64,000 nt of DNA from Amphiscolops sp. MND2022 (taxonomy: Eukaryota). Location of the stretch: positions 64,418,001 to 64,482,000 of the forward strand of contig OZ076412.1 in NCBI GenBank assembly GCA_964187785.1. The letters run 5' to 3'. The position numbers and the translations under genes were made by a program. The first letter of the stretch is position 1, and each line of letters starts with the position of its first letter. Under the pieces are notes generated by a model that worked only from the letters and a program-made list of their open reading frames with translations, searched no databases and was not told the origin of the DNA. Below, piece after piece: positions 1,702 through 32,460 of the stretch.

Positions 1702-1928
1702 CCTGAAGCGGGATTAGGAAAAGTTAGTTGACAATTTTATTTTTTCAAGTGCGTTTGATTAATCATTCTCCAGAAATTTTGCTTTTGTAATAATCGTGTT
1801 AATTACTTTTACTTAATATAATTCCTTTTGTTTCAGAAAACTTTGGAAAATCACTGAACTGAAGTCTCCATTACGTTTGTAACGACTCAAGTTTAATTGG
1901 AATATTGTTTCTCCACTATTTTTACAAG

Positions 1929-3344
1929 ATGCCTGAGCAATCTCAAAAACGAAAGTTGAGGAGTGACCAGTCGACTAGCCAGTTCGACGTAGAAACCGCG
2001 AGTTCTATCAACGACGAAAACACCGTACTTTCGGAAAGGGATTTTGAAGACATATCCAATAAAATTGAGAATAGAATTTCCAAGCGTCTTAAAGACACTG
2101 AACTCAATCAACGCGAGATATTAAAATTGATTGAGAACCTGTCGTCTAAAGTTGACAACCTCTCGAGCGTCAATTCTGAACAAGGTTACTTGACGACCAG
2201 AACTGAGAATAACGGAAACCCTACTGAAGAGCTAGAAGAAGTTAGTTTGTCTAGGAACGAGAGTTCCAACATGGTGACAGGAGTAATTAGCGAACCGACC
2301 TCCAGCAACACCCACCCCCGGTCTTCGAGCCTGCCGCCTCCAAACCAGAGGCACTCCGACGAAATCATCGACAAGCTGTTAGAATCCCTGTACGCAACAC
2401 AGCAACAGACAGCACAATTACCCCGTCTACCAAAAACGCTTGCCACGACAATGCCAACATTCGACGGTAAAAACGAAAAGTTTGAACTCTTCGAAGATTT
2501 GTTTCAAACAAGCTTGAAGGTCCATCCCCAAATAACGGAGCAAGAGAAAATACATTATTTCCACTCCCTACTGCGAGGAGACGCCTTGCAAACCTTTCGG
2601 AACATGACCGAAACAACCAAAACCAACCTGAACGACATCATCGCCGGATTCAGACGACGATATGTAAAAACCCAGTCAATAGCCACTGCTAGGTGTAAGT
2701 GGGAAAACCTCACATTCGACCCGGCGAACCAAACATTCCAAGATTTCTTGGAGAACTACCAGAAACTTGCCCAAGAGGCATACGCCGACGATGCACCCCG
2801 CTTTATAGAAACCTCCTTCTACGCAAAAATGCCGATACATCTCAAAAGAGTGTTAAATCAGGCACGCCTCGAAACAGCATCATATGAAACGATGGTCCAG
2901 CACCTAGAGCGGGAGATGGAGCTCAACGGATTGGCAAATCCAGAATCCACTACATTTACCGGCATACACAATGTCGAACCCGCCAACACATCCAATCAGG
3001 GGCGACACCCGAAAACTGCAAGCACGTGTTTTGGCTGCGGACACCAGGGCCACCTCCTCCGCAACTGCAGGAAGACAAACCGAGACAAACGGAACCAAAA
3101 ACCCCCCAACAATAACATCACCGACCCCTGCGAAACATGTGGCAAATTAAGCCACGAGACTAAAGACTGCTATTCTGGGGCGAACTGGGCAAACCGCCCT
3201 ACATGGTGGAAAATGCCTAAATCAACAGGCGCCAACAGTATACCCCTACCACAACAAACTGCACCCGAAACTATCCAACAACCTTCAGCAAATCAGCAGC
3301 CACAAACCGTGGCACAACCACAATACCAGCCAAAAAACTACTAA
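1929..3344 (+). CDS. gag: Gag with two CCHC zinc knuckles; N-terminal ~114 codons lie inside the LTR
   Basis: Capsid-like MPTFDGKNEKFELFEDLF...YFHSLLRGDA; knuckles CFGCGHQGHLLRNC and CETCGKLSHETKDC. ORF is open from 1905; first ATG is 1929, alternative ATG at 2271. Confidence 0.92.
   Translation: MPEQSQKRKLRSDQSTSQFDVETASSINDENTVLSERDFEDISNKIENRISKRLKDTELNQREILKLIENLSSKVDNLSSVNSEQGYLTTRTENNGNPTEELEEVSLSRNESSNMVTGVISEPTSSNTHPRSSSLPPPNQRHSDEIIDKLLESLYATQQQTAQLPRLPKTLATTMPTFDGKNEKFELFEDLFQTSLKVHPQITEQEKIHYFHSLLRGDALQTFRNMTETTKTNLNDIIAGFRRRYVKTQSIATARCKWENLTFDPANQTFQDFLENYQKLAQEAYADDAPRFIETSFYAKMPIHLKRVLNQARLETASYETMVQHLEREMELNGLANPESTTFTGIHNVEPANTSNQGRHPKTASTCFGCGHQGHLLRNCRKTNRDKRNQKPPNNNITDPCETCGKLSHETKDCYSGANWANRPTWWKMPKSTGANSIPLPQQTAPETIQQPSANQQPQTVAQPQYQPKNY
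2272..2284 (+). other. Primer-binding site, tRNA-Leu-like
   Basis: TGGTGACAGGAGT abuts the LTR end; one mismatch to TGGTGTCAGGAGT, the complement of the 3' end of eukaryotic tRNA-Leu(CAG) as I recall it. Confidence 0.75.
3332..3338 (+). promoter_or_regulatory. -1 programmed ribosomal frameshift slippery site A AAA AAC
   Basis: Canonical X XXY YYZ heptamer in the gag frame one codon before the last gag codon; the -1 frame is open from 3332 through 3431 into pol; weak hairpin GTCTTCG-CTT-CGGGGAC at 3351-3367. Confidence 0.85.
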
Positions 3345-6300
3345 AGCCACGTCTTCGCTTCGGGGACTACACCGACTTCAGATACTACACCATATCTGAA
3401 CCCCCGAAGGACTTCGACAAGGAATTATTTATGGAATGCTCAGGTGAACCATCGATCGACTGGCAGCGACGATGGCTCATAAGACGCATCATCAAATTCA
3501 ACAAAAACACCTTGGACAAACTCCCCTACCCAGAGTGGTACACCCAAAACCCCACCCAATACAACACAACACGCAGACCATTACTTCCCAGCTCCACACC
3601 CGAAACTTACATCTACGACCCCGACTTCGAATGCGACCCATACTACAACGATACTCTATATGACTCAACAAACCTTGTCTTCAGACAGTCAATCAACGTA
3701 CCATTTCATGAATTCATAGCCAAAACCAACATGGACATCTCGACAACTCCAAGAAGGAAAGACGACCTCAGTCATACTCCCGAACCACAGGCTGAAGAAG
3801 AATACGACACAGAAATCACTGTGATCGTAACACCTCCAACGACTTCCCTCAAGTCAATCCTCAAACACAATAATCAATCGCCACTGGTTGACTTCCAGTC
3901 ACCCACGAAACTCCCAGCCACCCCCAATGAAATCCGGGCAGCTATGACGTCGTCCCCCTCCAGTCCAGAGAGTCCTGAACATAAATACTCCACCCCTAAA
4001 ACCCTGGTTGACGACACAAAAGCCGGGGACCAAAAAATTGCAAGTCAACCCACAACACAACCGAGAACTCGCCGCGTCAAACGAACTCTGACCTGCGAAT
4101 TCAACCAGCAAACAGAAGCTAAAACAGCGACAAACAGCCCACTCATCACTACCCAAACCCTAAGAGAAGAGCCAACCAACCTAGAACAAGATGAAGAATG
4201 GATTCAAACCAACAAACAATTGCATGAAATTGCAATTACAGACCCAGAAACAAGCGAAAAATGCATACCAATTTTTTCGGCCATCAATCTGAAAAAGAAA
4301 AGGAAAATGCTCTTCGCCCCGATGGATTTCAACAACATTTCAGTCGACGCGCTTGTTGACTCCGGAGCACTCGTCAACTGCTTACCAGAAAGTGAATTCC
4401 AGAAACTCAAAACAGTAAGCCCAGACAACATCCTCAAGGAAATGGATCCACCAACCTTTAAATTGCAGGTCGCAAACGGCGAGATAGAAACCCCCACAAA
4501 AACAGTTCAACTACAATTTGAACTAGGCGACTGGACGTTCAAAGAGACGTTCATCGTAGCCACAAAGATGACAGGGCCCATCCTCGGACTAACCTTTCTT
4601 AAAAACAATAGCGCAATCCTCGACGTCAGTCAGGCCCTCTTACATTTCCCTCACCTGACTTATGCAATTTCTGCAGACGATAACGAGACAATCTCAAGAC
4701 AACATAAAGTCACTACCAAAACCCAACTCACCATCATGCCCGACCAGTGTGTAACAATTGAAGCCGGCATCAACCTACGTACCCTGACAAACACCACAGG
4801 AATCATCAACCCTACTGAACCATACTCCGGAGAACACCAACTGGTAGTAGCCAGCTCTCTATCAACAGTTACAAACTCCAAAATCGAAATCAGGGTTACC
4901 AACACATCTCCAAACCCATTCACCCTCAAAAAGAACACAAATATTGCAGAATTCACCATTCTATACCCCCAGGAAGCCAAGCAACTCCACCCACTCAACT
5001 CTGCAGCCCTAAAGGTATTAGCAGAAGACGATTCCGAACAGGCGCTAGAATATGTAAACGAACTCCTCAAATCGTCTGAAAAACCTCAGACTGTTCAAAA
5101 TTTCTGGTTCCCCACACCGGAAAACCCAGGAGACCCATCAACACACACACCTATCCAGAGCAGGATACTGAGAGAAATAGAAGAACTGGAAAACATCCAG
5201 AAACTCAATCCTCATGACAGCCCTGAGGACAGAGCAACTTTCCTATCCAATTTCAAATGGACGGATTCACAACTCAGTGATGAAGACAAAAAGGACATAG
5301 AAGCAATCCTTGTAGAATACAACGATATCTTCGCAAGGCACCGCCTTGATATCGGAATCAACAACGAATTCAAAATAAAGCTCACCCCCAAATCCGAACA
5401 GCCAGCGTACACTCAAAGCCTACCCTGCCCAGTCAACCTGAAAGACGACTTGACAGTCGAATTGGCGTTAATGCACTACTACGGCATAATCACCACGCTC
5501 CCTTTCAGCAAGTACGCAAGCCCAATATTTGCCCAAAGAAAACCAAACGGACGCCTACGATTGCTAGTTGACTTACGAAAGATCAACAACCTCATTTCCG
5601 ACGATTATATAAAAAATAATCACCCTGTGAGCACCCTCTCGGATGCAGCTCAGCATTTAGCCGGAAAGAAACTGTTTTGCAAGCTTGACTGTTCTCAAGC
5701 CTACCATGTCCTGCAAATGGCGGACCAGAAATCAGTGGAACTCCTGGCGTTCAACTTTGCCAGTCGGACATTCGCCTACCTGCGACTCGCACAAGGGCTC
5801 AGCAGATCTCTCTCCTCCTTCTCGAGCTTTATGCGGGAGTACCTTGACCGAGTCATCAAAGCCGACAAGTGCGCCCAGTACGTCGACGACATCCGGATAG
5901 CTACCCATACTGCCGAGGAGCTGAAGAACAACCTGCGTGAGGTCTTTCAGTGCATAAGAGAAGCAGGTCTGCGTCTGACAATGGCTAAATGCCAGTTCGG
6001 TGCCAAGGAAGTCGAATTCCTTGGACGAACAGTCTCACCCGAAGGAATCGCCCCACAGAGTCACAAGATCAAGAACTACCTACAAAAACTGTCGTTCCCA
6101 AAAACCAAAAAGGGCCTCCAGAGGTATATTGGTTTCGTTAATTATTATCGGAACTACATACCTCGCCTCTCCGAAAAGATAGCACCCTTCCACGAATTAG
6201 TCAAGGCAGACAAACCAATCAAGATCACAAACGAGATCATCGGGACATTCGACAACATCAACAAGGCACTTGACAACGCTTGTGGGCTATGGCTGAAACA

Positions 6301-8707
6301 ACCACTACCCAACAAACAGTACGTCCTCATGACAGACGCGAACTTCAAAAATGCAGGCTACGCCCTCATGATTGAAGAAAACGCTGATGAAAAACTGACC
6401 TCAGTTAAAAAGACTTACGCCCCGGTAGCGTTTGGTTCCAAGACATTCTCTCCGTCCCAAATCAAAATGTCAATATATGCCAAAGAATTCTTGGCTATAT
6501 ATTTCGCCTTCATGGAATACAGCCACATAGTGTGGGGATCGACCAAACCGGTCATCGTCCTAACAGACAACAAGTCCGTCACACGGTTTTTTCAAACCAA
6601 AATAATACCACCAGCCTTGTGGAACGCCTGCAATTTCGTCCTACAATTCAACTTTACGATCGCCCACGTCCCAGGGCGCATGAACACCGCAGCTGATTTC
6701 CTTTCCCGACTTGACCTAGACCCAAAGGAAAAAGTCCAACTCTTGATCCGAGACGACATTCAAACAACACCAATAGAGGTACACATTCAATCCTCCAACG
6801 TCGCAGAAGAGGAACAGTTCTACTTCCTCCCCGACGATGATATTGAAACCGAAGAACAAATTTGGGAGAGGAAGCAAAGAGCCCGCAAGAAAATTCTAGG
6901 GAACGACACCCCGCCAACGCCAGGAGAAGAAGCAAATAATGAAACAGTCCAAACAGAAGACACCACAGTCATATTTCAAACGGAAATAACAAGACACAAC
7001 AAAACCACCGAAGACAAAGAAAACACCCTCCCAACTGACATGCGACACCAACAGGACCAAGACAGTGTCCTCAGAAACTACAAACTGCGCCTCCTCAAGG
7101 AACCATACGATGAACACCTGATGGCCACAGACCACAGGGCACTCCGTTACACAGCGCAAGAATCGAGAATCATACTCAAGGACGGGCTGCTATACCGGCA
7201 GTACTTCGGAGAAACCGGAACAGTCCAACACCTGCAAGTACTACTCCCGGAGCATCTGGTCGACTCCTTCATCGAGGCACACCATGGAATGCACAACAAA
7301 CACCAGGGAATAACGAAAGTAATACAACAATGCAGAGAAAAGTATTACTACCCAAGTCTCGCAGCAAGGATAGCCAAACATATCAACCAATGCATGAAAT
7401 GCATGCAAACAAAACGAACAGACAATCGCCTCCTAACCCCACCAATGATCGACACGTCCAAACTGGCAATGGGACCCGAAGATGCCCTACAAATGGACAT
7501 CGTCCCCTTCGACGAGCCATCCAACGGATTCACAGCGATAGTCACCGCCATGGACGTCTTTTCCCGCTATCTATTTACCTATTGTGTCACCAAAATAGAT
7601 GCCCGCTCGATCGCAAGAGTACTGGTAGACATAATGACAAGACATGCTTACCTGCCCACAACGATCATAACTGACAAAGGAACTCAATTCATGTCCGAAG
7701 TAATGGCTGACACCACACGCGTTCTAGGCATCCAATTGAGACACGCAACTACCAAACATGCCCAAACAATTGGTATCCTAGAACGCTGTCATGCATCCTT
7801 AAAAGAAGCCCTGAAAATATCAACAGGAGAAAGGAGAACAATGTGGCACCAGTTCGTACCAACCGCCACACTAAACTACAACACAACCTACCACTCAGCA
7901 CTAGGGTGCGAACCCAGTAGAGTATTCCATGGCAGAATACCATACAATGTGCTTGACTTAAAGTTCGGTCTCAAACAGAACCAAACCCAAAACCCAAAAA
8001 CAGACATAGGCGAAGAAGTCGTCCAGAAGACCCGGATGCTACACCAATCAGTAACCAAACACCTCCTCCACTCCTACATACGGTACAAACAGTACTACGA
8101 TAAAAAAGCTTCTGCCCACCCCCTAGCAGCAAACGATTACTGCTACGCCTTACACCCCCAGGCAAACAACCAGGGATCGAAACTACCTTTCCGCGAGTAT
8201 TTATGGACAGGACCATTCGTAGTAGTTAAAACCCTTCCCAACAACAACTACCTAGTTCGTAAATTACAAACGAACAAGACCCAAATTCTACACAGGATAC
8301 GACTGAAACCATGTCCCACGAAAAATCGCCTTCCCGATATACAAGTTCAAACCAAGGACTTTCAACCAGACGATGAAGTTGAAATCCTACACGATGACCT
8401 ATACGCCCTAGCCTGGCAATCAGGGTTTGAACACTTCGTGATGACCCATAACCACGATTCCAACAACGAATCGGCAATCAACCCGACCGATAGTCATGAC
8501 GTCTTAGAAAACATTGCCCAGGATGACACCCACGATATCCTAACGGAACCCCAACCCGAACAACAGGAATCCCAACCAGAACCCAACCCAAACCCAGAGC
8601 CTAGTTCCCCCCGCAAAGGCAAATATAACCTTCGCAGCAACCCCCCTTCAAATTGGAAAAGGGACTACGCCTACTACAACCCAATGGTTGTTAGCTCAAA
8701 CGAATAA
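3332..8707 (+). CDS. pol: Pol polyprotein: aspartic protease, reverse transcriptase, RNase H, integrase (expressed as Gag-Pol)
   Basis: PR LVDSGA; RT LDCSQAYH, LAQGL, YVDD; RNase H MTDAN, AKEFLAI, LTDNKS, AADFLSR; IN HHGMHNKH..CMKC, QMDIV, ITDKG, ILERCH. Gypsy domain order; no internal stops. Confidence 0.96.
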   Translation, partial: KKLLKPRLRFGDYTDFRYYTISEPPKDFDKELFMECSGEPSIDWQRRWLIRRIIKFNKNTLDKLPYPEWYTQNPTQYNTTRRPLLPSSTPETYIYDPDFECDPYYNDTLYDSTNLVFRQSINVPFHEFIAKTNMDISTTPRRKDDLSHTPEPQAEEEYDTEITVIVTPPTTSLKSILKHNNQSPLVDFQSPTKLPATPNEIRAAMTSSPSSPESPEHKYSTPKTLVDDTKAGDQKIASQPTTQPRTRRVKRTLTCEFNQQTEAKTATNSPLITTQTLREEPTNLEQDEEWIQTNKQLHEIAITDPETSEKCIPIFSAINLKKKRKMLFAPMDFNNISVDALVDSGALVNCLPESEFQKLKTVSPDNILKEMDPPTFKLQVANGEIETPTKTVQLQFELGDWTFKETFIVATKMTGPILGLTFLKNNSAILDVSQALLHFPHLTYAISADDNETISRQHKVTTKTQLTIMPDQCVTIEAGINLRTLTNTTGIINPTEPYSGEHQLVVASSLSTVTNSKIEIRVTNTSPNPFTLKKNTNIAEFTILYPQEAKQLHPLNSAALKVLAEDDSEQALEYVNELLKSSEKPQTVQNFWFPTPENPGDPSTHTPIQSRILREIEELENIQKLNPHDSPEDRATFLSNFKWTDSQLSDEDKKDIEAILVEYNDIFARHRLDIGINNEFKIKLTPKSEQPAYTQSLPCPVNLKDDLTVELALMHYYGIITTLPFSKYASPIFAQRKPNGRLRLLVDLRKINNLISDDYIKNNHPVSTLSDAAQHLAGKKLFCKLDCSQAYHVLQMADQKSVELLAFNFASRTFAYLRLAQGLSRSLSSFSSFMREYLDRVIKADKCAQYVDDIRIATHTAEELKNNLREVFQCIREAGLRLTMAKCQFGAKEVEFLGRTVSPEGIAPQSHKIKNYLQKLSFPKTKKGLQRYIGFVNYYRNYIPRLSEKIAPFHELVKADKPIKITNEIIGTFDNINKALDNACGLWLKQPLPNKQYVLMTDANFKNAGYALMIEENADEKLTSVKKTYAPVAFGSKTFSPSQIKMSIYAKEFLAIYFAFMEYSHIVWGSTKPVIVLTDNKSVTRFFQTKIIPPALWNACNFVLQFNFTIAHVPGRMNTAADFLSRLDLDPKEKVQLLIRDDIQTTPIEVHIQSSNVAEEEQFYFLPDDDIETEEQIWERKQRARKKILGNDTPPTPGEEANNETVQTEDTTVIFQTEITRHNKTTEDKENTLPTDMRHQQDQDSVLRNYKLRLLKEPYDEHLMATDHRALRYTAQESRIILKDGLLYRQYFGETGTVQHLQVLLPEHLVDSFIEAHHGMHNKHQGITKVIQQCREKYYYPSLAARIAKHINQCMKCMQTKRTDNRLLTPPMIDTSKLAMGPEDALQMDIVPFDEPSNGFTAIVTAMDVFSRYLFTYCVTKIDARSIARVLVDIMTRHAYLPTTIITDKGTQFMSEVMADTTRVLGIQLRHATTKHAQTIGILERCHASLKEALKISTGERRTMWHQFVPTATLNYNTTYHSALGCEPSRVFHGRIPYNVLDLKFGLKQNQTQNPKTDIGEEVVQKTRMLHQSVTKHLLHSYIRYKQYYDKKASAHPLAANDYCYALHPQANNQGSKLPFREYLWTGPFVVVKTLPNNNYLVRKLQTNKTQILHRIRLKPCPTKNRLPDIQVQTKDFQPDDEVEILHDDLYALAWQSGFEHFVMTHNHDSNNESAINPTDSHDVLENIAQDDTHDILTEPQPEQQESQPEPNPNPEPSSPRKGKYNLRSNPPSNWKRDYAYYNPMVVSSNE

Positions 8708-9102
8708 ACTTTCAATATGAATTCATGAAATGGTACACCTACTACTCACTCAATTGACCTGAAACTGACTGAAATCCCTACAACTCAGCTATAAACTCAA
8801 TAGAAAACGAAATCGAGGAGCAAGAAAATATATTGGTCAAATGCCCCATACGTTTTACTCGACTAAGCCAAGACCCGCAGAGGAGCCCAGTTTTCAATCA
8901 ACCTCTTTAAATTCATTTGGTATCGCTCAGTAAATGGATACACCAACAATGATGTCCGAAGACGCAAATCAAATTACAAATATGTACGATCAACAAAATC
9001 ATCAACCAACTATATGGCTACGAAATGGAAAATCGAGAAATTCTATAAATTAACATCAACATCAAAAGTTAGCAAAGTTTAACGTCGACCCATCAAGAAA
9101 GT

Positions 9103-11694
9103 TCACTTCGAACCGCCAGGGGCACTCTTTTTCGACGAATGGCCTTTAGTAGTAATGGCACTAGTGGAAGCACCACGACGACCAGCCTTCTTCTCTTGCA
9201 ATTTCTGTGACACACTGCTAGCACCACTAGCAGAAACAAGCGATTTAGCTGACGCGACAGGAACACCGCTTCCAAATCCCACTTTAGACGTAGAACAAGA
9301 AACAGGGACCTCAACTTCGGCCGAAACGCTGGCTGGAGCAACTGCGGGCGAACTGTTGATAGGAGAACCTGACGATAACACTCCCAATCCAGCTCGACGA
9401 CGCCAATCAGCCACCTGGCCCATATAATAACCATTGAACCTCTCCCGCAAGTCACGATAGAGATCCTGATGAGACTGCAAATACAATGGCCGCCAAGGAG
9501 AAAAAGAAGCATTGGACATAAATACATGTCCCACTGGCAAATTCGCTTTCAACTCATCAAGACAATCTTTAGTCAATAACTCTCCAGAGACGAAAGCACC
9601 ATCCGAGACATAAGACTGCAAAGACAGAATTGAGGACAACAGTATCTTCTTGGGAACAGACGACCCACTGAGAGACATCTCCACTCTGGCATAGCGGGCA
9701 GCCCGGGGAACGACCCCAACGGAAACCAAAGCAATCACCTTCGTTAGGTGCACACGACACCCCAACAACCCACTCTCATGGAGGAAGGAAAAGCTGTTCT
9801 TAATGGTCGTAACCACTCGGCGATTCTTCCGTCGTAAATCCACCAAGAGCGATTTAAACTCGTTACTGGCACCCTCGGCTTCAACGGAGGACAGACGACC
9901 ACAAGCCTGAAGGCAGGAGACCAACTCTCGGAAGAGAGACACTGTGTAAGCCTCGTCACCCTGAAGGAGCATATCAGGAGAAAGACAACTGAGACTTGAA
10001 GCCAACAAGGAAGTGGAATACGAGGATACGTTCAGCACTTTAAGGAACTCCATCAGGAACCCATGACATTCACGGAGGAAATTCCGCTTCGCGGCATCGC
10101 TACATCCTTGCAACGCTTTGAGAACGATTGGCTCACTCCTCAAACAGTCGACATACGCCACATTCGACCAGGTGCATAACGGACGACCAATATACAGGCT
10201 CCACTCCTCGATTCTCGGCAACTCTGACAATTTCTTCACTTTACCCAAGAGACTCCAATAAAAAAAGCAGAACTCAGCGTAATTACGACAACTGTAATCG
10301 GTCACACTCTCGTCACCTTGTTTTTCAAAATTAGACTGGAAACAAGACACCAGCACATGCAACAAACTCAAACGAGGCAACACGTATGAGTCCGAAACGA
10401 TCAGCTGACCCAAATCAACCGGGGTTTTTCCCCGAGGTGGAGCTGTAGCACCGCTTTCCTTGAGAACAAGCTTCACGTCTTCCCAATGGTCGACCAACTC
10501 TTCCAAAACGGCACCCAAGACACTGAAGGGAATCTCTCGCTTCCGAACACACTGACGCAACTCCACTAAACCCAGCATCCAGGGCTGATAAACAGCTTTG
10601 TTGAACTGTAAAACCAGGAAATCCAAGACTGCAAAAGGATCCAAGGAATGGGCACCAACCATGCCCGCTTCACGCACATGACTCTTGAAGACACTCGGAG
10701 AATACTCTAACAAGGACAGAGGTACAGACCGATCACGAGCACGACACCACTCACTGAACACATTGAACAAGGTGGGCGAACATCCGAGTAATACAACTGG
10801 AGAATGAGTCTCAGGGAGGGTTGCTAGAACACGCGACAGACACAGAATTTCGGCATCACAGATTCCTGACGAATAGGGTTCCCACAACAGAGTCACCTCA
10901 CGAACGTGACTACCGACACAACACCGGACAATGCAGCAGACTCCTTCATCCTCCTCGCGAAACAAGATGCTGAAAGGTGAGTCCTTACACCAAGAGTACA
11001 CTCGACGGAGCACACGAGGATACAAGGTCTGACAGACTATCACGAGCGACTCTGTTTTGCTCCATGTAGCCTGAGCATACGACGACTCGACCGGGATAGT
11101 GACCCGAAATTGATTCCACAGCCGCCTCAAAAAGCTGTGTGACCCGCCACTCCGAAGGAGCTCGAATAGACCACCCACAAGCGTCGCAGAAGGAACGTTA
11201 GAGACGACACCAACTAGAGCATCCACTTCGTCTTCCCTGAAAGGATTCTTCTTACCCAGGACAACGGGGGGCGTCTGCTCAATTTCCGCACGCAACTCAC
11301 TGGAAATATCGGCGACCTTCACGGGGTCAAACTGAGAGGTGTAAATCACATCTTCATGATCCAATCTGTATCGTCGATCCTTCAGATAGTGACTCTTGCG
11401 ACTGAAGTGTCGCCAGATTTCAGGCTCACCCCGACTCAGGAAAGAAATGTCCTTTTGACAAATTGCACAATTAAACCCGTTCGGGTTCTTATCTGACCTC
11501 TGGCTGACGAATAACTGGGGAATAGCATGCCCAGCCATTTCTCTACGCAGAACATGTCGCTCAGTCTGCCTCTGCTTCCTCCGCTCATACTTCGCATAGA
11601 GTCTCCGTTTCGTCTTCTCTTCATCGTCCAACTGACTGGAATCCCGATGCATCTGTATGCCTTTTGACTTCAGGAGTCGCACGATTCGATCCAA
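9103..11694 (-). CDS. Antisense accessory protein: degenerate (catalytically inactive-looking) hAT-family transposase homolog with BED-like C2H2 zinc finger
   Basis: 863-codon ORF; FNCAICQKDISFLSRGEPEIWRHFSRKSH (C76, C79, H96, H102); colinear hAT-like blocks WSKTESLVIVCQTLYP..CKDSPFSILFREE, EELVDHWEDVKLVL, RLSLLHVLVSCFQSNFEKQ, FLRECHGFLMEF, SLSCLSP, HLTKVIALVSV..LLSSILSL. True start is uncertain (TTG 11694, ATG 11652, or splicing). Confidence 0.75.
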   Translation of the reverse strand: MDRIVRLLKSKGIQMHRDSSQLDDEEKTKRRLYAKYERRKQRQTERHVLRREMAGHAIPQLFVSQRSDKNPNGFNCAICQKDISFLSRGEPEIWRHFSRKSHYLKDRRYRLDHEDVIYTSQFDPVKVADISSELRAEIEQTPPVVLGKKNPFREDEVDALVGVVSNVPSATLVGGLFELLRSGGSHSFLRRLWNQFRVTIPVESSYAQATWSKTESLVIVCQTLYPRVLRRVYSWCKDSPFSILFREEDEGVCCIVRCCVGSHVREVTLLWEPYSSGICDAEILCLSRVLATLPETHSPVVLLGCSPTLFNVFSEWCRARDRSVPLSLLEYSPSVFKSHVREAGMVGAHSLDPFAVLDFLVLQFNKAVYQPWMLGLVELRQCVRKREIPFSVLGAVLEELVDHWEDVKLVLKESGATAPPRGKTPVDLGQLIVSDSYVLPRLSLLHVLVSCFQSNFEKQGDESVTDYSCRNYAEFCFFYWSLLGKVKKLSELPRIEEWSLYIGRPLCTWSNVAYVDCLRSEPIVLKALQGCSDAAKRNFLRECHGFLMEFLKVLNVSSYSTSLLASSLSCLSPDMLLQGDEAYTVSLFRELVSCLQACGRLSSVEAEGASNEFKSLLVDLRRKNRRVVTTIKNSFSFLHESGLLGCRVHLTKVIALVSVGVVPRAARYARVEMSLSGSSVPKKILLSSILSLQSYVSDGAFVSGELLTKDCLDELKANLPVGHVFMSNASFSPWRPLYLQSHQDLYRDLRERFNGYYMGQVADWRRRAGLGVLSSGSPINSSPAVAPASVSAEVEVPVSCSTSKVGFGSGVPVASAKSLVSASGASSVSQKLQEKKAGRRGASTSAITTKGHSSKKSAPGGSK

Positions 11695-13025
11695 CTTTAA
11701 ATAATAAAACCAAGATGAAACCCACTAATAACGAATTACAACACGCACATACGAACCAACGATCAACAGAACACTACGACATAACAGGACTAACAAAATT
11801 GACAACGGCAAAACAAGAACTTACGACGCGACAGTGACCTCTCATCACCACGAGATTGCGACCGCTCCAGACGTACAGCAGCCCGACCATATGCCAGCAC
11901 CTGACTGGATGAGAGACAAATCGCCCCAGAAGGCACATCGGATAATCCAGCTAAAATACAAAGAAGCAATGAAACCCAATGCACCACGCCTTCACCAAGA
12001 CAAACCTACTACGACCTACGAAGATGACAACAAAGCATAATACCTTTGCCCCATTCATTGTGCAATACAGACTGCTCCACACCCTCGGCGGGACGACCAT
12101 GTTGAGTCCGACTGCGCCTCGTCTTCGAACCACTAGCCCCATCGTCTGCGAAAACATCAGGCGTCACACCGGGCGATCCACTGGATATAAGACCCAAAAG
12201 GTCGAAGACGTTTTCTCCTTGAGGGATGGGTGTCTGAACTGCAACAAAAATGAAACCGATAACGCGAGCTTAGATATTCACCCAAGACCAACAAAAGAAT
12301 TCCTACCTTCACCCTCCGAGTCTGGGAATCGAACCACAGCAATCCCAGGGCTGTCATCTGAGCTCGACACATTGGGACGCACCTTCTTGGAAGCACCCTC
12401 CCCAGCATTCGACATCAGCCGCTTGCTGCGCCGAGACCCAACAGAGAGAGAAGTTGTCCCAGGAGCAAAATCCACGTCATTAGAATCGTCGGAGGCTACT
12501 GAAACCAAAGAAAGGTAGATGAAATGACGCGTCTGTGTACTAGCATTAAAATTGTTAACTGGCCATTAACAAATAGCTAAGAAACCCACCGTGTTGGTCA
12601 TGAAGATAATCTAAGTCATGTCGCGCATCACTCCCAGAAGAATGGATGGAAGCATCATCATCATCACTAGCATCGACAGCACCAACTTGTGCGGCATCAG
12701 CGGCATCGTCAGAGTCGTCATCATCACTGTCACCAGTATCGATCTCACCGAAACCAGCAGCCCTTCGTGGAGCCGCCCCACTTACTTCACCCAACTGTCC
12801 ATCGACCGGTGCCGCAGTATCCACAGACACACCGCCTTGACACACCCCACCTGAGCCCTCCACTATTTGTAACTGACCCTCGGACGCTTCACCTCCTTCC
12901 TCACTCTCACCGTCACTGTCCACACCAACTCCTCTTCCACGCAAAGATTCACGCTCACTCTCAATCACTCCAATATCCCGAGACAGGGCAAAACGAGTAG
13001 CATCCTCGTCTGTCGAATCCGCCAT
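11621..13025 (-). CDS. Antisense five-exon gene encoding a ~340-aa acidic, low-complexity protein
   Basis: Predicted exons 13025-12590, 12498-12307, 12238-12044, 11950-11825, 11694-11621; GT-AG introns of 91, 68, 93 and 130 nt, all phase 1; the splices join track ORFs 12555-13085, 12278-12508, 12009-12197 and 11790-11987 in frame; total 1023 nt = 341 codons. Confidence 0.7.
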
Positions 13026-13304
13026 AACTTGACAAAACAATCTGAAATAATACCATTCAATAGAATAACATCGAAGACGTGGCATAAAACCAATGCTAAT
13101 ACTAATATTACAAACTAATAGTATGACGTAATGGAAGTCATTCAGTCTGCCAGCTGAAAACTTTCACATTCATGCAAGCGGCGTGAACAGAAGAAAAGAA
13201 CGGAATTATCATTCAATTACTCGACCATTCCGCAGAACAGCCGCTCAGCATTGCTTACAACTATTACTATTTATTGCATACAATTTATTTACTCATCGGA
13301 TCAA

Positions 13305-13955
13305 ATGAATTCATCGACACTCAATTCCTCAACCGATTATTTCATTTTGGACCGCGACCAAGACGCTGCCCCAGTAAACCCCCGCGCACATTCAACACCT
13401 ACAGCGCTTGGTGATAATTGCCAAAATACTCAAACACCAATTATCGAGGATATTTACGAGATTATCAATACTGGGACAGAACATATTGTCCTTTACCATG
13501 AGTCGGCGCCGATATCTATACTAGAAACAGCCCAATCAGATACATTACCATCCAGGAAATTTACAAACTTCAACCCAATTATCCCGGATGACGAATTCAT
13601 GAGCCCCCCTAGAAACTACGAGAATATGGACAATTGGCTATACGGGCCGCACGATGGGACAATCAGCCCCATCTCTAGTAACTCTAGTTCGATAGGTTAC
13701 TTCTCAGGAAGTGACTGGTCAACAGATTCGTCCTGGATGTCTTATGATTCAATGGTACAGTCTATATTTCAACCCCCCATCTCTTCCCCATTCAGGCCAA
13801 TTTCACCACTTCTTCCCACAATGGACGTCTCTCATCAAAGCCGGGGACTGTCACAGCCGCCACAGGGCCGTGAAATAATAAGAACAGAGAGAACGCCAGA
13901 GGAAAGAAATGGCGAAATTAACCAAGAAGAAGCTAATAAACCATCACAAACCTGA
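13305..13955 (+). CDS. Sense accessory ORF (216 aa, Ser/Pro/Asp-rich) crossing the PPT and ending inside U3
   Basis: ATG 13305 to TGA 13955 (open from 13251); last ~35 codons are inside the 3' LTR; no recognisable domain. Confidence 0.55.
   Translation: MNSSTLNSSTDYFILDRDQDAAPVNPRAHSTPTALGDNCQNTQTPIIEDIYEIINTGTEHIVLYHESAPISILETAQSDTLPSRKFTNFNPIIPDDEFMSPPRNYENMDNWLYGPHDGTISPISSNSSSIGYFSGSDWSTDSSWMSYDSMVQSIFQPPISSPFRPISPLLPTMDVSHQSRGLSQPPQGREIIRTERTPEERNGEINQEEANKPSQT
13837..13848 (+). other. Polypurine tract (plus-strand primer)
   Basis: AAAGCCGGGGAC immediately 5' of the 3' LTR; position is diagnostic, purity is imperfect. Confidence 0.6.
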
Positions 13956-16050
13956 AAGGAAACAATCAACAAACAAACACTCATTGATATTGAACAACCC
14001 TGTAAGTGCATAATATTAATATCATCAATCCTCTGCAGTACCTGAAATACATAAATATGTAAATAATTAAATAATAATAACTTGTTGTAAATGTGATTTG
14101 TTTGCAGTAGCTTGACCAATACGCTGATTGAAGTTATTCCAACCAGCGCACTGACCAGCCTACCGTCCCAATATCTGCGTAGCAAAACACACTAATTCTC
14201 ACTGTCCTTTTAATTAACCAATCAGCGCCAAGCGCGAATGTGCAGTATTAACTCAGCTACTATACTCGTCAAGCCACCAGTCAGCAAAGACTGGGACGCA
14301 CGCCTGGGAGCTCGATCGAATTAATCAAAGTGCTAATATATTAAGTGACGTCACGTGTGAAGTGAATACAAATCCAAAGCTTAGAAGAAGCTTAAATTGT
14401 GCAGTATTCAATAGTGAAGATCGAAAACGTAATATTTATAGCATGAAAAGGTGTGATTGAAGATTTGTCGATCCCGATAATTGGGACGACCGCCGGGACG
14501 ACCGTTCTAAATTTATAATCTGGGACGACCACCGGGACGACCGTTCTAAATTTATAATCTGGGACGACCACCGGGACGACCGTTCTAAATTTATAATCTG
14601 GGACGACCGCCGGGACGCTCGTTCAGTCACTCTAACTGATCAATCAAGTACAAATAATCGATGCTAACTCTAGATAAATGTTTTGTGGCTTAAAAGAAGC
14701 TAAATACCAAAAGTACTTCCAATGAGTAATAATCGATGATGCTTGTAGTATTTTTAACGTGTTCGGTCCACCTTGTAGTTGAGTCAACTTCCCAGGCGGA
14801 GCGCTAAATTTCTTTAATATTACAAGAGCCTGGACAGCTGACCGAACGTATTCAATTAATACATGCCCTATAGTTAACCTAATAACAATGTTGCCCCTGT
14901 TAAATGTGATATTTGACGATAATATAGTAAAACAACCCCCAGTGCTGCCTTTTCCAGTCCTCACATGCAATGTTTTGTTAATACATAGTTGAGTCAATAG
15001 CCCGGTCAAACGGCCAGGTCACTCTAAATGAAATTCGTTACCTGGCGTTCACCCAGGACTTTTTCGTTAGCTTCAATTTAAAGTGCTAATTAACGGCCAT
15101 AATCATCTGATTTAGAAGAAATCAGTGCTGTTAGTTTATTTCTTTGATGTTTCCCTCAAATTACTAGTAGTAAAATTTGGGATTGTTCGGTGATAATTTC
15201 ATTTCCTTTTCCCGCTTCAGTAGCTAGGTTCATGAATTTCAGTGCCAACTTCACCTTCGGCGTCTTGAAAAGGCGGGGAATGAAGAAGAAAGGGACGCGG
15301 AATTGGGAAGCGGCAGGAAGTGAATTCCCACTTTTCTTTAAAGTGGGTTGAAGCCGAATGCCGAGTCCCGAGGAAGAGTACCTTATTTGGATTTCCCCGC
15401 TTCGGAAAAGACGCCGAGGTGAACAAGGTGTGAATTCACGCGCGGGGTTTTCTCCGCGTGTCTAGCGTAAAGTATAAATACCTGAAGCGGGATTAGGAAA
15501 AGTTAGTTGACAATTTTATTTTTTTAAGTGCGTTTGATTAATCATTCTCCAGAAATTTTGCTTTTGTAATAATCGTGTTAATTACTTTTACTTAATATAA
15601 TTCCTTTTGTTTCGGAAAACTTTGGAAAATCACTGAACTGAAGTCTCCATTACGTTTGTAACGACTCAAGTTTAATTGGAATATTGTTTCTCCACTATTT
15701 TTACAAGATGCCTGAGAAATCTCAAAAACGAAAGTTGAGGAGTGACCAGTCGACTAGCCAGTTCGACGTAGAAACCGCGAGTTCTATCAACGACGAAAAC
15801 ACCGTACTTTCGGAAAGGGATTTTGAAGACATATCCAATAAAATTGAGAATAGAATTTCCAAGCGTCTTGAAGACACTGAACTCAATCAACGTGAGATAT
15901 TAAAATTGATTGAGAACCTGTCGTCTAAAGTTGACAACCTCTCGAGCGTCAATTCTGAACAAGGTTACTTGACGACCAGAACTGAGAATAACGGAAACCC
16001 TACTGAAGAGCTAGAAGAAGTTAGTTTGTCTAGGAACGAGAGTTCCAACA
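13849..16050 (+). repeat. 3' LTR (2202 bp)
   Basis: Near-identical copy of 70-2271; preceded by purine-rich AAAGCCGGGGAC and followed by the TSD. Confidence 0.97.
14482..14624. repeat. 39-bp tandem repeat, 3' LTR copy
   Basis: Same array as 703-845. Confidence 0.95.
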
Positions 16051-16055
16051 TATAC
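16051..16055. other. Target-site duplication TATAC (right copy)
   Basis: Directly follows ...CCAACA at 16050. Confidence 0.93.
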
Positions 16056-17633
16056 CTTTCCGCAAGCTAGTGAGCTGGAAAATTCATCACGCATTCACGC
16101 TTCATTCAGCCCGGCGTCCTTCCGAGGTGACAAAACCGGAAGTTCAGTTCCGCTTTGTCGAACTCAGACTCTCAGTTTGTTCATGCTTCCCGGGGAAAGC
16201 ACGCGTCCACTTCCTGTCTGAGTTGCGACTCCGCTTCCCTTCACCTCCAATTCCCGCCTCTTTAGGACGCCAAAGCTGAATTCAGCATCAAAATGTACAA
16301 TGACTCAGAATTTTGCTTCCAAAAGAATAGGGAAAAATAGCAACGATACAATAATGACTATTTTATGGAGATTGAAAATCTCCCAAATTAATCGGATCAA
16401 ATACTGCTCTGGTTAATTATCTCACTAACAAACTGCAAAAACGATTTGTAAATCCCTTCAGGGGACATGAATATGCTAATTATTCACAATGGAAAAAATC
16501 CAAATCCCAGGCGGTAGTCCGGGACGATTTGGATAAGACGAAGGAATAATTTCATGAACGAAATTGTATAGCAACGAAACAAAGATTTACATGAAGATAA
16601 GTCATCCCAGGGACACTATTTGGGACGTTAATTAACCTGGTTACATGAGAATTTGCTTGGGAGAAATAATACGGCACAGTTTGAGAGTTTTAGTCTCAGG
16701 CCGGGGTCTTGGCCATGGATTCATATTATCAGGTGTTTGAACATAGTTGCATGAGAAAATTATCACAGATAGCATACAATCATCCATTATTGTTTGCAAT
16801 TACATATATCAGGTAGTGGTTTCATTGAGGGAATGTAAAATTAACTGTAGCGCCGTTATTTCCATTTCAAGAGTGTGTTCCGGCAATTTTCATCTCAGGC
16901 CACGTCCTGGGCCGCAGTCCGCTGCGTTTAGAAATTAAACAACGTTACATGAATAAAACTGCTACAAGTTACATGCAATTAACGGTTATTTTTTACAATC
17001 ATGAGTATTGGTTCATGGCTTCATTGGGAAAGGCAGAAAATCATTATTAACACTATCATCTTCCATAAAAATGGATTTCTAGGTGCATGGTGTCTCAGGC
17101 CGTGATATTCAATTTCTGTACGTTTGTTGCTTTCATTCAATCACTTGTACATTAATACGCCTAGCATCGTTCAATTTGCATACAAAATGTTTTATCAGGT
17201 TAATGCTCATACAATAGTACTGCACTATGCTGTTAATTAGCAGCGCACAGCATATTTCGATTTCAGGCCACTCGCCACGCCGGCGCTTCACTGCTTGAAT
17301 CTCAGGCCGGTTGCCAGGCCGCGGTTCCGCCATTGTTATTATTTATATAGCACTAATAAATATTATTAGCTGCACTAACAGCTTCATACTGGTTGGTACA
17401 CTGTGTGTGTATGTGTATATTAAGTAATACTGTATATATGTACATATACGTGTATTTATATAATTTTAGCTCCGAAATAATTTCAAGTAATAAATATATC
17501 TATCAGCACTAAATTAGTTGTATATTAGTTATTTCACTTGCCTTTCCTTTTCTTTTACTCTAATCCCAACTTCCTTCTCCGTAGACCGCGCTTACTACAT
17601 GACAGGTCTCACAGATTAGCTGGGGCTGTGACA
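16056..17633 (-). mobile_element. LTR of a related Gypsy family in opposite orientation, interrupted by the 16-kb element (continues at 64 to 1 and beyond the window)
   Basis: Minus strand begins TGTCACAGCCC at 17633 (cf. TGTCACAGCCG); reverse complement of 16251-16274 matches 1477-1500 at 19/24; reverse complement of ~16105-16127 resembles 1621-1644; its TATA run sits ~1580 nt from the LTR start versus ~1625 in element 1. Confidence 0.7.
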
Positions 17634-19012
17634 ATAACACCCCGGAAGTGTCGTGGCTGGTATAACCATACAATGACATATATTCCAGACTGCCTTGCTA
17701 TGAAGCCTATTGATGGTTAAATATGTTATCCATTTTATCAAGTTTATCTGTTTTCTCTCTCATTATATATTTGTGGCAATTTGTGTATAAATGTTTCAAT
17801 AGAAATTCGTTTGTTTCAATTGAACTCACTTTTGGGAAAAAGAGAACTTATTTTGGCTTCACTGTTTCAAAAGGAAATACTTTTGTTTCAGACGGGCTCA
17901 TTTTTGTCTCAATAGGCGTTGAAAAGGTGTAAAAGATGCCAGAGGCAAACTTTGTCCCTCCACTCATATCAATAATATTTGATTTTAACATTTTGAAAAC
18001 GCCCTTCTTAAAATTTTACACACGGTATGATCCAAAAACGCAAACTTTTCAGTTTTTTTAAAATTATTGTCACGGCGGGATTACAATTCTTTTTAGCTGT
18101 TCATTTCTCAAGAAAGCATTTCGAGAAAAAAGTGTGAGATTTAAAACTTAAAGATGTCAGAGCTACAAAATCGATCAAAAATGATGATATAACTTTTAAA
18201 GTTGAGTATTGATTCGGCTCCGAAACAAAAAATACTCTGGTAATTTTGATTAATTGTGAGACTTTTGCTTCTGAGACATTTTTCTGTAAAATGATTTTAA
18301 TAAAACATATTGCAGTTTGAAATTTTCCGTTAAAGAAATCAAACAAATCGAGTGTTTAGCTTCTTGATACCATAGTGCCGTCTCTTCAACAGTTTGCTGG
18401 TAGACCACACGGTTGAGGAGAAGAAAACAAGAATTCGGGAGGTAATGTAGCAAATCGTTAACTGCAACTGGTTGCCACAGAGAAAAAAAAATTTCATGAA
18501 ACTCACAGCAAGACTCACAATCCGGGATCACTTTTGAATTTTTAAATGTTTCGTTTATTAAAAAAAAAACGGAACAATATATACAATTTAGAATCACACC
18601 TAATAACACTAGTAGAAAGATGATAAAGGAAATCGGGAAAGCAAAGAATTGCCTTATTCACCATTGCCCAGATTCATCGCCGCGTAAAATTCCATTCATA
18701 TTCCTCCATTCAAAGATTTCAAGCCGTCCCCATGCTTGGTTTGGCATGAAACCATTTGGTTCTGTGACATGATGTCATAATGTTAAGATTGACCGTTAAG
18801 GTCATTTGATCATACTGACAGATAAGGTCATTTGATCATACTGACAGATAAGTACCTGTCAACCTTTGTGTTAATGCTAATGCTTGTACATCTTATCGTA
18901 GTAGACTCTGTTAGATTTGAATACGAGCTACAATACACCATACATTGTTACAAGCTATCTTATTGTTACACTTCTTACAACAATATAGAACATGGCGCAG
19001 TCAGATTAAAAG

Positions 19013-19870
19013 ATGGAGGGAAATAAAACATCCGAAAGCACAAGCTCCTCAAATGAAGAAACCTCAGAACGTGGAAACCAAATGAAATGAGAAGACCCAC
19101 CAGAAGATCACTACCCACATTCGATAAAAGAGGCTTCCAAGAAGACAAACTGTGGTGGCGCAGATTCACACGGTAAATAAAGATGACCGAAATTATCGAT
19201 CTGAACACAATGACGAAAGACCGGGAAATACTGGAACATTATGAAGAAGACCTAGACAACCGGATAAAAGGTTTATTTTTTGAGCGTTGGGAGAATCAGC
19301 CATAACGGAAGTGACAAGAACCGTAAGAGACAATGATCCCAATAGAATGGACATAAACCAGTTATATTCACTGTTTCGTTTACATTTTATTCCGGAACGA
19401 AATAAATTAGATTGTTGCGCAGATTTCTTTGGAATAACCAAAGAGAAGATCGAAACGGCCGAAGATGTATGGACAAGAATTCTACTGGTAGAAAAGAATT
19501 GTGAGTTTGAAATTGTAACACCGGCAGAATTAATTGCCTCCAAATTACTAACCGGGAGATCAACAGGAGATTACGAGCAAAACAAAAAGATACGAAAAAG
19601 CAGTATGACAATTGAGAAAATTGCGGAACTAATACCTGAATACATGTATGACAGACTAAACGATTCAAACAACTCAAATGACGGGAGAGGAATACAACAT
19701 GTACAGGACTGACAAATCCACTAACGAAAAACCAAGAGAAGGAACAGACAATCAGAAAACAAAGAACAAAGACAACCGATGCGGACAATGTGGAGCGCCA
19801 AACTGGTCAAGACAACACAAGTGCCCAGCAAAATCCGCAGAATGCCGAAATAAAAAAAGACGATGACACT
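19013..19870 (+). pseudogene. gag: gag remnant
   Basis: TRTVRDNDPNRMDINQLYSLFRLHFIPERN.. and knuckle-like CGQCGAPNWSRQHKCPAK, broken by frameshifts and stops. Confidence 0.75.
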
Positions 19871-19989
19871 ACGAGAAAATAAGCAGATCGTTGAAAAAAG
19901 TACAACACATCGAAAGGAAATCGTCATCTGCAGACGATTATAACTGCGACTACAGCACAATACAAAAGATAAAGGGCAAGAACCAAAAG

Positions 19990-30796: not shown

Positions 30797-31952
30797 GGCG
30801 GGGTGGTGACCTTTGACCTACCTATGTTGACCTTTGACCTACCTATGCTGACCTTTGACCTACCTATGTTGACCTTTGATCTACCAAAACGCTCCGTTCT
30901 GCAGAAAGAAGCACATTTAGGTAGGTCAAAGGTCACCACGGTCCATGGAACGTGGTGACCTTTGATCTGCCTTGGCCTCCTTTCTGCAGAAATAAGCGTT
31001 TTTTTTCCCCAAACGTTTGCCACTTTTGACCTCAAGTTGGCAAAAAAAAACCTTAAAACATGAAATTGTTGAACAGCCATTTTGAAGCCTGACATGTTTT
31101 ATTTGGCTGATGCTTCCCTTTCTATTGTCTTGTTTCTCTTGATTATGTATTTTTTTGTTCCTTCCTTTCTTTCCTTTCTTTCTTACTTTCTTTCTTTAGC
31201 TCTGATTTTCTTCTTCTGCTTCTTTGACTTAGACGCAAAAGAAGNNNNNNNNNNNNNNNNNNNNNNNNNNNNNNNNNNNNNNNNNNNNNNNNNNNNNNNN
31301 NNNNNNNNNNNNNNNNNNNNNNNNNNNNNNNNNNNNNNNNNNNNNNNNNNNNNNNNNNNNNNNNNNNNNNNNNNNNNNNNNNNNNNNNNNNNNNNNNNNN
31401 NNNNNNNNNNNNNNNNNNNNNNNNNNNNNNNNNNNNNNNNNNNNNNNNNNNNNNNNNNNNNNAACACTGGGAAACAAGGTTTCTTTTTTGTTTTCTTGTG
31501 GGTGTTCTGGGGTAAACAACAANNNNNNNNNNNNNNNNNNNNNNNNNNNNNNNNNNNNNNNNNNNNNNNNNNNNNNNNNNNNNNNNNNNNNNNNNNNNNN
31601 NNNNNNNNNNNNNNNNNNNNNNNNNNNNNNNNNNNNNNNNNNNNNNNNNNNNNNNNNNNNNNNNNNNNNNNNNNNNNNNNNNNNNNNNNNNNNNNNNNNN
31701 NNNNNNNNNNNNNNNNNNNNNNNNNNNNNNNNNNNNNNNNNNNNNNNNNNNNNNNNNNNNNNNNNNNNNNNNNNNNNNNNNNNNNNNNNNNNNNNNNNNN
31801 NNNNNNNNAAAAACATGGACAACAACAACAAAACAACAACAAAACCAAAAAACAACAACAACAGCAACAAAAACAACAAACAAGAACAACAACAGCAACA
31901 AAACAAAACACAACAACAACCACAGCAACAACCAACAACCAACAACCAACAA

Positions 31953-31997
<45 letters not shown>

Positions 31998-32460
31998 AAA
32001 CAACCAAAAAAAACCCAAAAAAACAAAAACCTCAAAAAAGTCTAGGTAGATCAAAGGTCAACATGGTAGATCAAAGGTCAACATAGTGTTGACCTTTGAT
32101 CTACCTTCATGTTTTTTGCAAAATTGATGTTGACCTTTGACCTACCAAAATTTGCTTATTTCTGCAGAAGGGAGGGGTAGGTAGGTCAAAGGTCAACATA
32201 GGTAGGTCAAAGGTCAACACACTGTTTTTTCAACAAAACCAGGTAGGTCAAAGGTCACCACGTTCCATGGAACGTGGTGACCTTTGACCTACCTCAAGCG
32301 CTTATTTCTGCAGAGCCAAGCGTTTTCGAAAAAAAAAAAAAAAGGTAGGTCAAAGGTCAACACAGGTAGGTCAAAGGTCACCAAAATGGTTTTCTTTTAA
32401 TCATTTGGTACGATAAATTCCAGGAAAAACAGCTAGGTAGGTCAAAGGTCACCACCCACC

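Follow-up and report, generated by a model that had tools for sequence, protein, structure and literature searches.

A putative hAT-derived antisense gene carried by Ty3/gypsy retrotransposons of Amphiscolops

Described systems and the locus compared

Domesticated hAT proteins are well known in hosts (PMC8097297). In the plant elements Retand, Grande and RIRE2, antisense open reading frames (ORFs) located between pol and the 3' long terminal repeat (LTR) carry a TRP28 domain, and their origin has been called unknown (PMC7264820, PMC11963269). A retroviral antisense gene, HBZ of human T-cell leukaemia virus type 1 (HTLV-1), is cited in PMC11963269. Here we describe an antisense gene in a complete Ty3/gypsy LTR retrotransposon of Amphiscolops sp. 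MND2022, found at the start of a 64,000-nucleotide stretch of DNA (contig OZ076412.1, positions 64,418,001 to 64,482,000 of the forward strand; hereafter the window, to which all coordinates refer). The best overall explanation, to which we give a probability of about 0.6, is a spliced, non-catalytic accessory gene of the element, derived from a hAT transposase.

Compared with Hermes and other hAT transposases (PDB 4d1q, 2bw3, 8edg), the gene is without sequence similarity, without the two catalytic Asp residues and the CxxH/Trp signature, and without terminal inverted repeats (TIRs) or an 8-bp duplication; by contrast, it is predicted to be spliced and is encoded by a retrotransposon. With the domesticated hAT proteins of hosts (ZBED, EPM2AIP1, FAM200, ZMYM1/6, GTF2IRD2 and ZNF862, as well as CGGBP-type binders; PMC8097297) it would share a fold maintained without transposition, the DNA-binding N-terminus presumably being the working part in both cases. 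However, those proteins are products of single-copy host genes, whereas the gene described here is multi-copy and is carried by, and evolves with, a retrotransposon clade. The antisense ORFs of Retand, Grande and RIRE2 resemble it in their place and orientation, in the long region separating pol from the LTR, in their near-universal presence in active members, and in their predicted DNA binding and proposed regulatory role (PMC7264820, PMC11963269). The present gene differs from them in its predicted hAT fold, its conserved introns and its apparently non-plant host, and no Pfam match to TRP28 (PF04195) was obtained for the antisense protein or for 22 members of its family. A functional parallel may be drawn with HBZ and with VANC, the anti-silencing proteins of Arabidopsis VANDAL DNA transposons: both are element-encoded nuclear factors, independent of the main transcript, that modulate the expression or silencing of their own element. 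Their folds are unrelated, however, VANC comes from DNA transposons, and the role proposed here is predicted from sequence.

In the literature searched, whose coverage was incomplete, no LTR retrotransposon turned up with an antisense gene of hAT origin. Within the same limits, the statement of a preliminary description of this locus that no such pairing of class I and class II elements was known still holds. If our reading of the sequence and of the model is right, a class I mobile element has appropriated a gene from class II, a pairing that we did not find described.

The antisense gene and its predicted protein

The ORF occupies positions 9103-11694 of the minus strand (863 codons), between the pol stop codon (8707) and the 3' LTR, and is read from the strand opposite to gag-pol; the full open frame around it comprises 873 codons. 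Such a run is not a chance event, since 2,000 shuffles of the 5.1-kb region following pol never produced an open run longer than 264 codons, and the composition-based stop-codon frequency gives a probability of ~2e-20 for 863 open codons. The preliminary description started from an intact ORF of this length between pol and the 3' LTR of a young element, and both the coordinates and the LTR mismatches given below confirm it.

A word-indexed search returned 39 relatives at 45-90% identity, none of which contains a Pfam domain, and an exhaustive profile search returned 828 proteins at E <= 0.001, mostly fragments. The 1.07-Gb genome of origin yielded >10,000 first-look candidate matches. Among the 53 best-scored of these, which are mostly near-full-length copies, 41 are stop-free over ~2.5 kb, and the 53 fall into subfamilies at 97-100, 74-77 and 62-67% identity; further subfamilies were revealed when the genome was searched with a homologue from a second sample. 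Codon comparison of 14 copies shows that synonymous differences between subfamilies are saturated (proportion of synonymous differences, pS, 0.74-0.79), with a proportion of non-synonymous differences (pN) of 0.15-0.37 and a ratio of non-synonymous to synonymous rates (dN/dS) below ~0.1. Within two other subfamilies, dN/dS is 0.09-0.16. These comparisons show strong purifying selection on the ORF. Its retention in sister copies, a point raised in the preliminary description, is clear as well: most are open, at pS ~0.75 against pN 0.15-0.37.

All homologues for which the genomic context was fetched are placed and oriented alike: each runs towards the 3' end of a gypsy pol, beyond which lies a DUF1759 gag. 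This layout is shared by homologues of 63%, 50% and 47-49% identity, as well as by more distant ones, in two samples. The second sample (ENA assembly ERZ1742291) contributes two of the context-checked homologues, L042 and L043; a homologue from this sample is at most 49% identical to anything in the present genome. The gene thus adjoins gypsy pol in the window, in every fetched context and in those loci of the same genome that reach pol, and we regard it as very probable that the hAT-derived gene is integral to the element. An ordinary hAT DNA transposon, active or decaying, might have nested in the retrotransposon by chance, the more so in a genome where real hATs abound (of 2,215 candidates, 150 were scored as PF05699 matches, some with open frames of 600-700 amino acids). 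Several of these genuine hATs (for example, among loci L027-L031) have open transposase frames of 580-690 amino acids with catalytic DDE, CxxH and TRW. However, the best inverted repeats around the antisense gene (11-18 nt, 76-92% complementarity) are at chance level and no 8-bp target-site duplication is found, as the preliminary description had already reported. No sequence similarity to the genome's own hATs is detectable, the conserved catalytic Asp residues are missing, and the same position and orientation recur across synonymously saturated subfamilies and in the second sample, down to homologues of 47-63% identity. Because the inverted repeats are at chance level, the duplication is absent and the layout is conserved across saturated divergence, a chance hAT insertion is left with a negligible probability.

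We built an AlphaFold model of the protein on the family alignment and searched for similar folds with Foldseek. Residues are numbered from the first ATG, at 11652, unless ORF numbering is stated. The predicted local distance difference test (pLDDT) score of the model averages 74 and reaches ~90 over residues 200-755, where the predicted topology runs through a long helix, three strands, a helix, a strand, a helix, a strand, an all-alpha domain of ~300 residues and C-terminal helices. In the model, as in hAT transposases, an RNase H-like core is thus split by an all-alpha insertion and followed by a C-terminal helical region. The core, of beta-beta-beta-alpha-beta-alpha-beta order, corresponds to residues 225-335 (10648-10980, minus strand, as are all parts of the protein); the predicted insertion domain to residues 341-640 (9733-10632); and the C-terminal helical part, which is colinear with the Hermes C-terminus, to residues 641-755 (9388-9732). 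The protein closes with a low-complexity, Ser/Ala-rich tail (residues 756-849; 9106-9387) that is poorly conserved, disordered in the model and ends in a basic patch.

Against the PDB, the top 12 Foldseek matches are all Hermes hAT transposase (probability 1.00), followed by noise. The nearest reviewed proteins (AFDB Swiss-Prot) are ZNF862, EPM2AIP1, ZBED5, PRKRIR, FAM200A/B/C, ZMYM1/6, GTF2IRD2, ZBED4/6 and maize Ac; AFDB clusters return the same hAT-derived families, ZBED8 among them, and ESM Atlas matches belong to ZBED5-like, ZMYM1-like and DUF659 families. Language-model features agree weakly with the hAT reading. We therefore accept, on the strength of the predicted structure, that the protein has a hAT-transposase fold. 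The closest predicted structures in the ESM Atlas form two clusters of 771 and 827 amino acids, mostly arthropod and without Pfam domains, which align with a template modelling (TM) score of 0.55-0.60 over ~560-575 residues; these may be counterparts of this gene from other animals.

In RNase H-like transposases, the first catalytic Asp ends beta1, the second follows beta4, and a Glu lies after the insertion domain. The five motifs of the preliminary description occur where it had placed them, and on a hAT-like fold they map to the predicted strand beta1, the last part of beta4, strand beta5, the beginning of the insertion domain and the motif near the C-terminus. At beta1 (residues 227-233, FSILFREE), the Asp column holds R/K/Q/H, or E or K in the most divergent members, and no neighbouring column is conserved as acidic. 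After beta4 (287-289, LLGCSP; span 287-291), the columns read G/D/N/S, C and S/P, again with no conserved acidic residue. CxxH and TRW are invariant in five real hATs of the same genome, and neither occurs at the colinear places in the 22 full-length members or in ~150 fragments. Further downstream, a V-[D/E]-x-S-x-S-G motif (657-663) is colinear with the hAT motif S-E-R-x-F-S; within it, residue 658 (E here) is D or E in 22 of the 22 full-length members and S/N/T/V/L in more distant ones. The claim of a catalytically dead transposase thus stands for the first two positions and for CxxH/Trp, but less clearly for the third, which may lie at residue 658, acidic in the full-length members. With two of the three catalytic residues gone family-wide, lost transposase chemistry is the best reading, and we consider the protein probably non-catalytic.

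Might the protein nevertheless retain nuclease or recombinase activity through a non-canonical site made, for instance, of E258, E268 and the acidic residue 658? E258 and E268 are nearly invariant, the third residue is acidic in all full-length members, and the RNase H-like scaffold is retained with high model confidence. However, none of the three sits at either Asp position, the acid at 658 gives way to other residues in the more divergent members, and few structured regions are less conserved than the core (40-77% identity between subfamilies), contrary to what is seen in active transposases. We judge residual enzymatic activity very improbable; the weak conservation of the core agrees with lost transposase chemistry. 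The best-conserved region is instead formed by the zinc finger and the domain that follows it (residues 39-215), with 74-92% identity between subfamilies. The finger motif, C-x2-C-x16-H-x5-H (CCHH type; 11389-11469), was already part of the preliminary description, and its Cys and His residues, C62/C65/H82/H88 (C76/C79/H96/H102 in ORF numbering), are invariant or nearly so in the 22 homologues.

Comparative splice-site analysis indicates that a larger, spliced minus-strand gene is present, of which the 863-codon ORF forms just the final exon. What had been said of the ORF as a gene is therefore right in that it is open and selected, but it would not be the whole gene, and the splice acceptor next to it is disrupted at 11697 in this copy. 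Together with two bases of the junction codon, the last exon spans 9103-11696 (first ATG 11652). Further minus-strand coding blocks, marked by frame-specific conservation, lie upstream of the ORF. The last intron (11697-11824), with a GTAAGT donor at 11824, separates the ORF from a 42-codon exon (11825-11950) that shows 58-78% amino acid identity across subfamilies. This exon is bounded by a pyrimidine tract and AG on its 5' side and by the GTAAGT donor on its 3' side; the flanking AG and GT are conserved, and phase-consistent, in six other subfamilies. It is preceded by a 93-nt intron (11951-12043) and by an exon at 12044-12179, with a GT donor after 12044 and an approximate 5' border. In L042 and L043 these exons are contiguous, and the codon at their junction is precisely the one expected once the 93-nt intron is taken out. 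The 93-nt intron, present in the subfamilies examined here and missing from both second-sample homologues, represents an intron gain or loss in a retrotransposon-borne gene.

The last intron is of phase 1, like the others; in seven other subfamilies its AG lies two bases before the first conserved codons of the large exon, with the frame kept across it. The acceptor dinucleotide is intact in eight of eight sister copies. The window copy differs at 11697, and this difference recurs in contigs of the four sequencing runs that matched the stretch. No RNA run was among the matches: these contigs look like genomic DNA, and their three 'joints', with sides of 21-23 nt, are uninformative. Further upstream, conserved antisense coding blocks encoding acidic, Asp/Ser-rich sequence extend over 12302-13031, with provisional borders. 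They are split by a stop-rich GT..AG stretch, which contains a 1-nt length difference near 12551 and is probably an intron, as judged from its sequence. The predicted protein would thus open with the Asp/Ser-rich acidic stretch of an upstream exon and close in the basic patch of the tail. An ATG at 13085, belonging to a 176-codon antisense ORF, was rejected as the gene start, being private to the window copy. Listing, without comparative information, all GT..AG exon chains that keep the ORF open from an upstream ATG produced hundreds of alternatives, and the comparative analysis was used in its place.

Introns in a retroelement may seem paradoxical. Antisense introns, however, would survive retrotransposition, since in the genomic RNA, which is of sense polarity, they would not be recognised for splicing; the introns may thus persist because the gene faces backwards. 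Introns are also what one expects of a host gene, and we may hypothesize that the element took up a host gene of the ZBED/FAM200 kind, already domesticated and inactive, which would be compatible with the same function. That the protein is structurally closest to domesticated hAT proteins and not to active transposases, and that the catalytic residues are missing in every member seen, even the most divergent, would fit such a transduction. On the other hand, all homologues with a checked context sit inside gypsy elements, no stand-alone copy occurs among the best ~50 of >10,000 candidate matches, and transduced genes are usually sense-oriented (PMC7264820). We consider this origin unlikely, and favor direct derivation of the accessory gene from a hAT transposase.

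The retrotransposon and its exchangeable cassette

The whole element is a complete Ty3/gypsy LTR retrotransposon of 15,981 bp, flanked on either side by the 5-bp target-site duplication TATAC (65-69 and 16051-16055). Its LTRs begin with TG and end with CA (5' LTR 70-2271, 3' LTR 13849-16050, both plus strand), and the pair shows 10 mismatches in 2,202 bp. On the plus strand, a gag ORF (DUF1759/Retrotrans_gag; 1905-3344) has an open frame that begins within the LTR, its start being provisional, and is followed by a pol ORF of 1,758 codons (3431-8707) encoding protease, reverse transcriptase, RNase H and integrase in Ty3/gypsy order. With all these features present, the sequence identifies the element as a young gypsy-type retrotransposon.

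Whole-element comparisons delimit a sharp-bordered cassette (8823-12947, minus strand; borders at ~8807-8849 and 12929-12948) that contains the antisense gene and shows only 65-73% nucleotide identity between elements whose gag-pol are 96-99% identical. We computed identities from 3 kb of pol sequence and from 2.2 kb of the large exon. The window element and element L033 are 98.8% identical in pol and 65.4% in the exon; conversely, L033 and L034 are 85.0% identical in pol and 98.3% in the exon. Elements with pol identities of ~74% show exon identities of 64-74%. Since synonymous sites are saturated and dN/dS is low, this pattern reflects the recombination of old selected alleles and not fast protein evolution: as read from these alignments, the cassette recombines between gag-pol backbones.

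The block that lies upstream of the antisense gene, beside the 3' LTR (12948-13848), behaves differently, with 85-92% identity across subfamilies, even where pol identity is 73%, so that in one comparison it exceeds pol; it is a candidate antisense promoter or cis element. Between subfamilies whose cassettes are ~65% identical, its identity is 85-97%. Within this block, the summed word depth at positions 13125-13301 is ~30 times that of the remaining element (~10,000-22,000 versus ~300-650; DNA contigs of four runs). This stretch may be a shared repeat of much higher abundance, or else a cis element under strong constraint.

That the cassette moves between backbones as a unit, like an independent replicator, also suggests a selfish passenger, for which the retrotransposon would be a vehicle without benefit; alternatively, the gene could serve the host as a repressor. 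However, a neutral segment of ~4 kb would vanish quickly from a retroelement, and purifying selection on this gene is strong in many lineages that are deeply diverged and recently active. We find this alternative quite improbable. Somewhat less doubtful, and still tentative, is the idea that the cassette is an exchangeable functional module, with anciently diverged regulator alleles kept in one genome and shuffled between backbones. Cassette types would then perhaps differ in how they evade or counter host silencing, and the exchange could be likened to env swapping in retroviruses or to the swapping of immunity regions in phages.

A second variable region of the element lies midway along the LTR. 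A 39-bp tandem array of 3.8 copies is present in both LTRs (698-845 and 14477-14624), its unit containing GGGACGACC twice. The alignment with element L001 breaks within this array, and the following 650 bp of the LTR do not align. We considered the variable LTR segment as a binding site matched to the cassette type and rejected it, as L001 and L033 have the same cassette type and a differing LTR segment. A 234-codon sense ORF (13251-13955, plus strand) extends into the 3' LTR; it has no Pfam match, and its frame shows 87% amino acid identity, versus 74-83% for the other five frames, when compared with a subfamily at 85% nucleotide identity. Elsewhere in the window (31082-32086), overlapping ORFs of 270-330 amino acids on both strands coincide with N runs (31245-31462 and 31523-31808); these are artefacts of masked or gap sequence and not genes.

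Proposed role and significance

We propose that the large last exon belongs to a spliced gene integral to a clade of ~16-kb Ty3/gypsy elements, and that its product descends from a hAT-superfamily transposase which would have kept the finger, the split RNase H-like core and the C-terminal helices while losing the catalytic Asp residues and CxxH/Trp. Translated from a separate antisense mRNA, the protein would be an accessory factor that binds nucleic acids in the nucleus and does not cleave DNA. We infer such a factor from the fold without Asp residues, the constraint on the N-terminal part, the acidic extension and basic patch, the splice signals, and the retention of the gene in active lineages. 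Origin by capture, DNA binding in the nucleus and a benefit to the element are all parts of this proposal. The benefit would most likely lie in the control of transcription or chromatin state; integration tethering or interference with host hATs seems less likely. For the more specific claim that the protein is a nucleic-acid-binding regulator of the element itself, we see roughly even odds.

Several observations weigh against this proposal. First, of the comparisons with hAT proteins suggested in the preliminary description, the structural one succeeded, with Hermes filling the top 12 places, but the profile one did not: Pfam gave no relevant match for the ORF or for any of the 22 members at E <= 10, including to Dimer_Tnp_hAT, zf-BED, DUF659 or DUF4371. 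A profile search of PDB sequences gave no match either, and hhalign returned a probability of 0.1 when the family was compared with five real hAT transposases from this genome, which had been confirmed by Pfam and by alignment to Hermes; only the finger aligned weakly. As these sequence-level links are absent, hAT homology is argued from predicted structure. Likewise, since hhalign failed against the real hATs, residue equivalences and the places of the catalytic sites were drawn from the topology of the model; E658 may lie where the third catalytic residue is expected. Second, residues 30-222 folded alone reach a pLDDT of 49, a low confidence, so that the BED nature of the finger is read from its motif. 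Third, antisense transcription and splicing are predictions from the DNA. The last acceptor is disrupted in the window copy though the 863-codon exon is open, and for this reason this copy may not make the full protein. Finally, the N-terminal part varies least, yet it should vary most if cassette types differed in DNA-binding specificity.

The preliminary description had named three outcomes that would have spoken against it, namely the lack of any match to the hAT fold, an intact catalytic triad with flanking TIRs and target-site duplication, and an ORF absent from or decaying neutrally in sister copies. None of these outcomes was obtained: the model matches Hermes, neither an intact triad nor TIRs with a duplication were found, and the ORF is retained under selection.

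Transposase domestication is known as a host activity. In the present case it is a second mobile element that appears to benefit. At least one family of the additional antisense ORFs known from LTR retrotransposons thereby receives an origin, and the locus indicates that a gene with introns can be maintained in a retroelement if it is carried in reverse orientation. The well-conserved finger region provides a concrete handle for binding studies, and the two-way mismatch between cassettes and backbones makes the modular evolution of accessory genes directly testable in one genome. If the tentative reading of the cassette as an exchangeable module holds, the elements would count as complex retroelements whose regulatory gene came from a DNA transposon, and would exemplify a transposase domesticated by a mobile element and not by its host.

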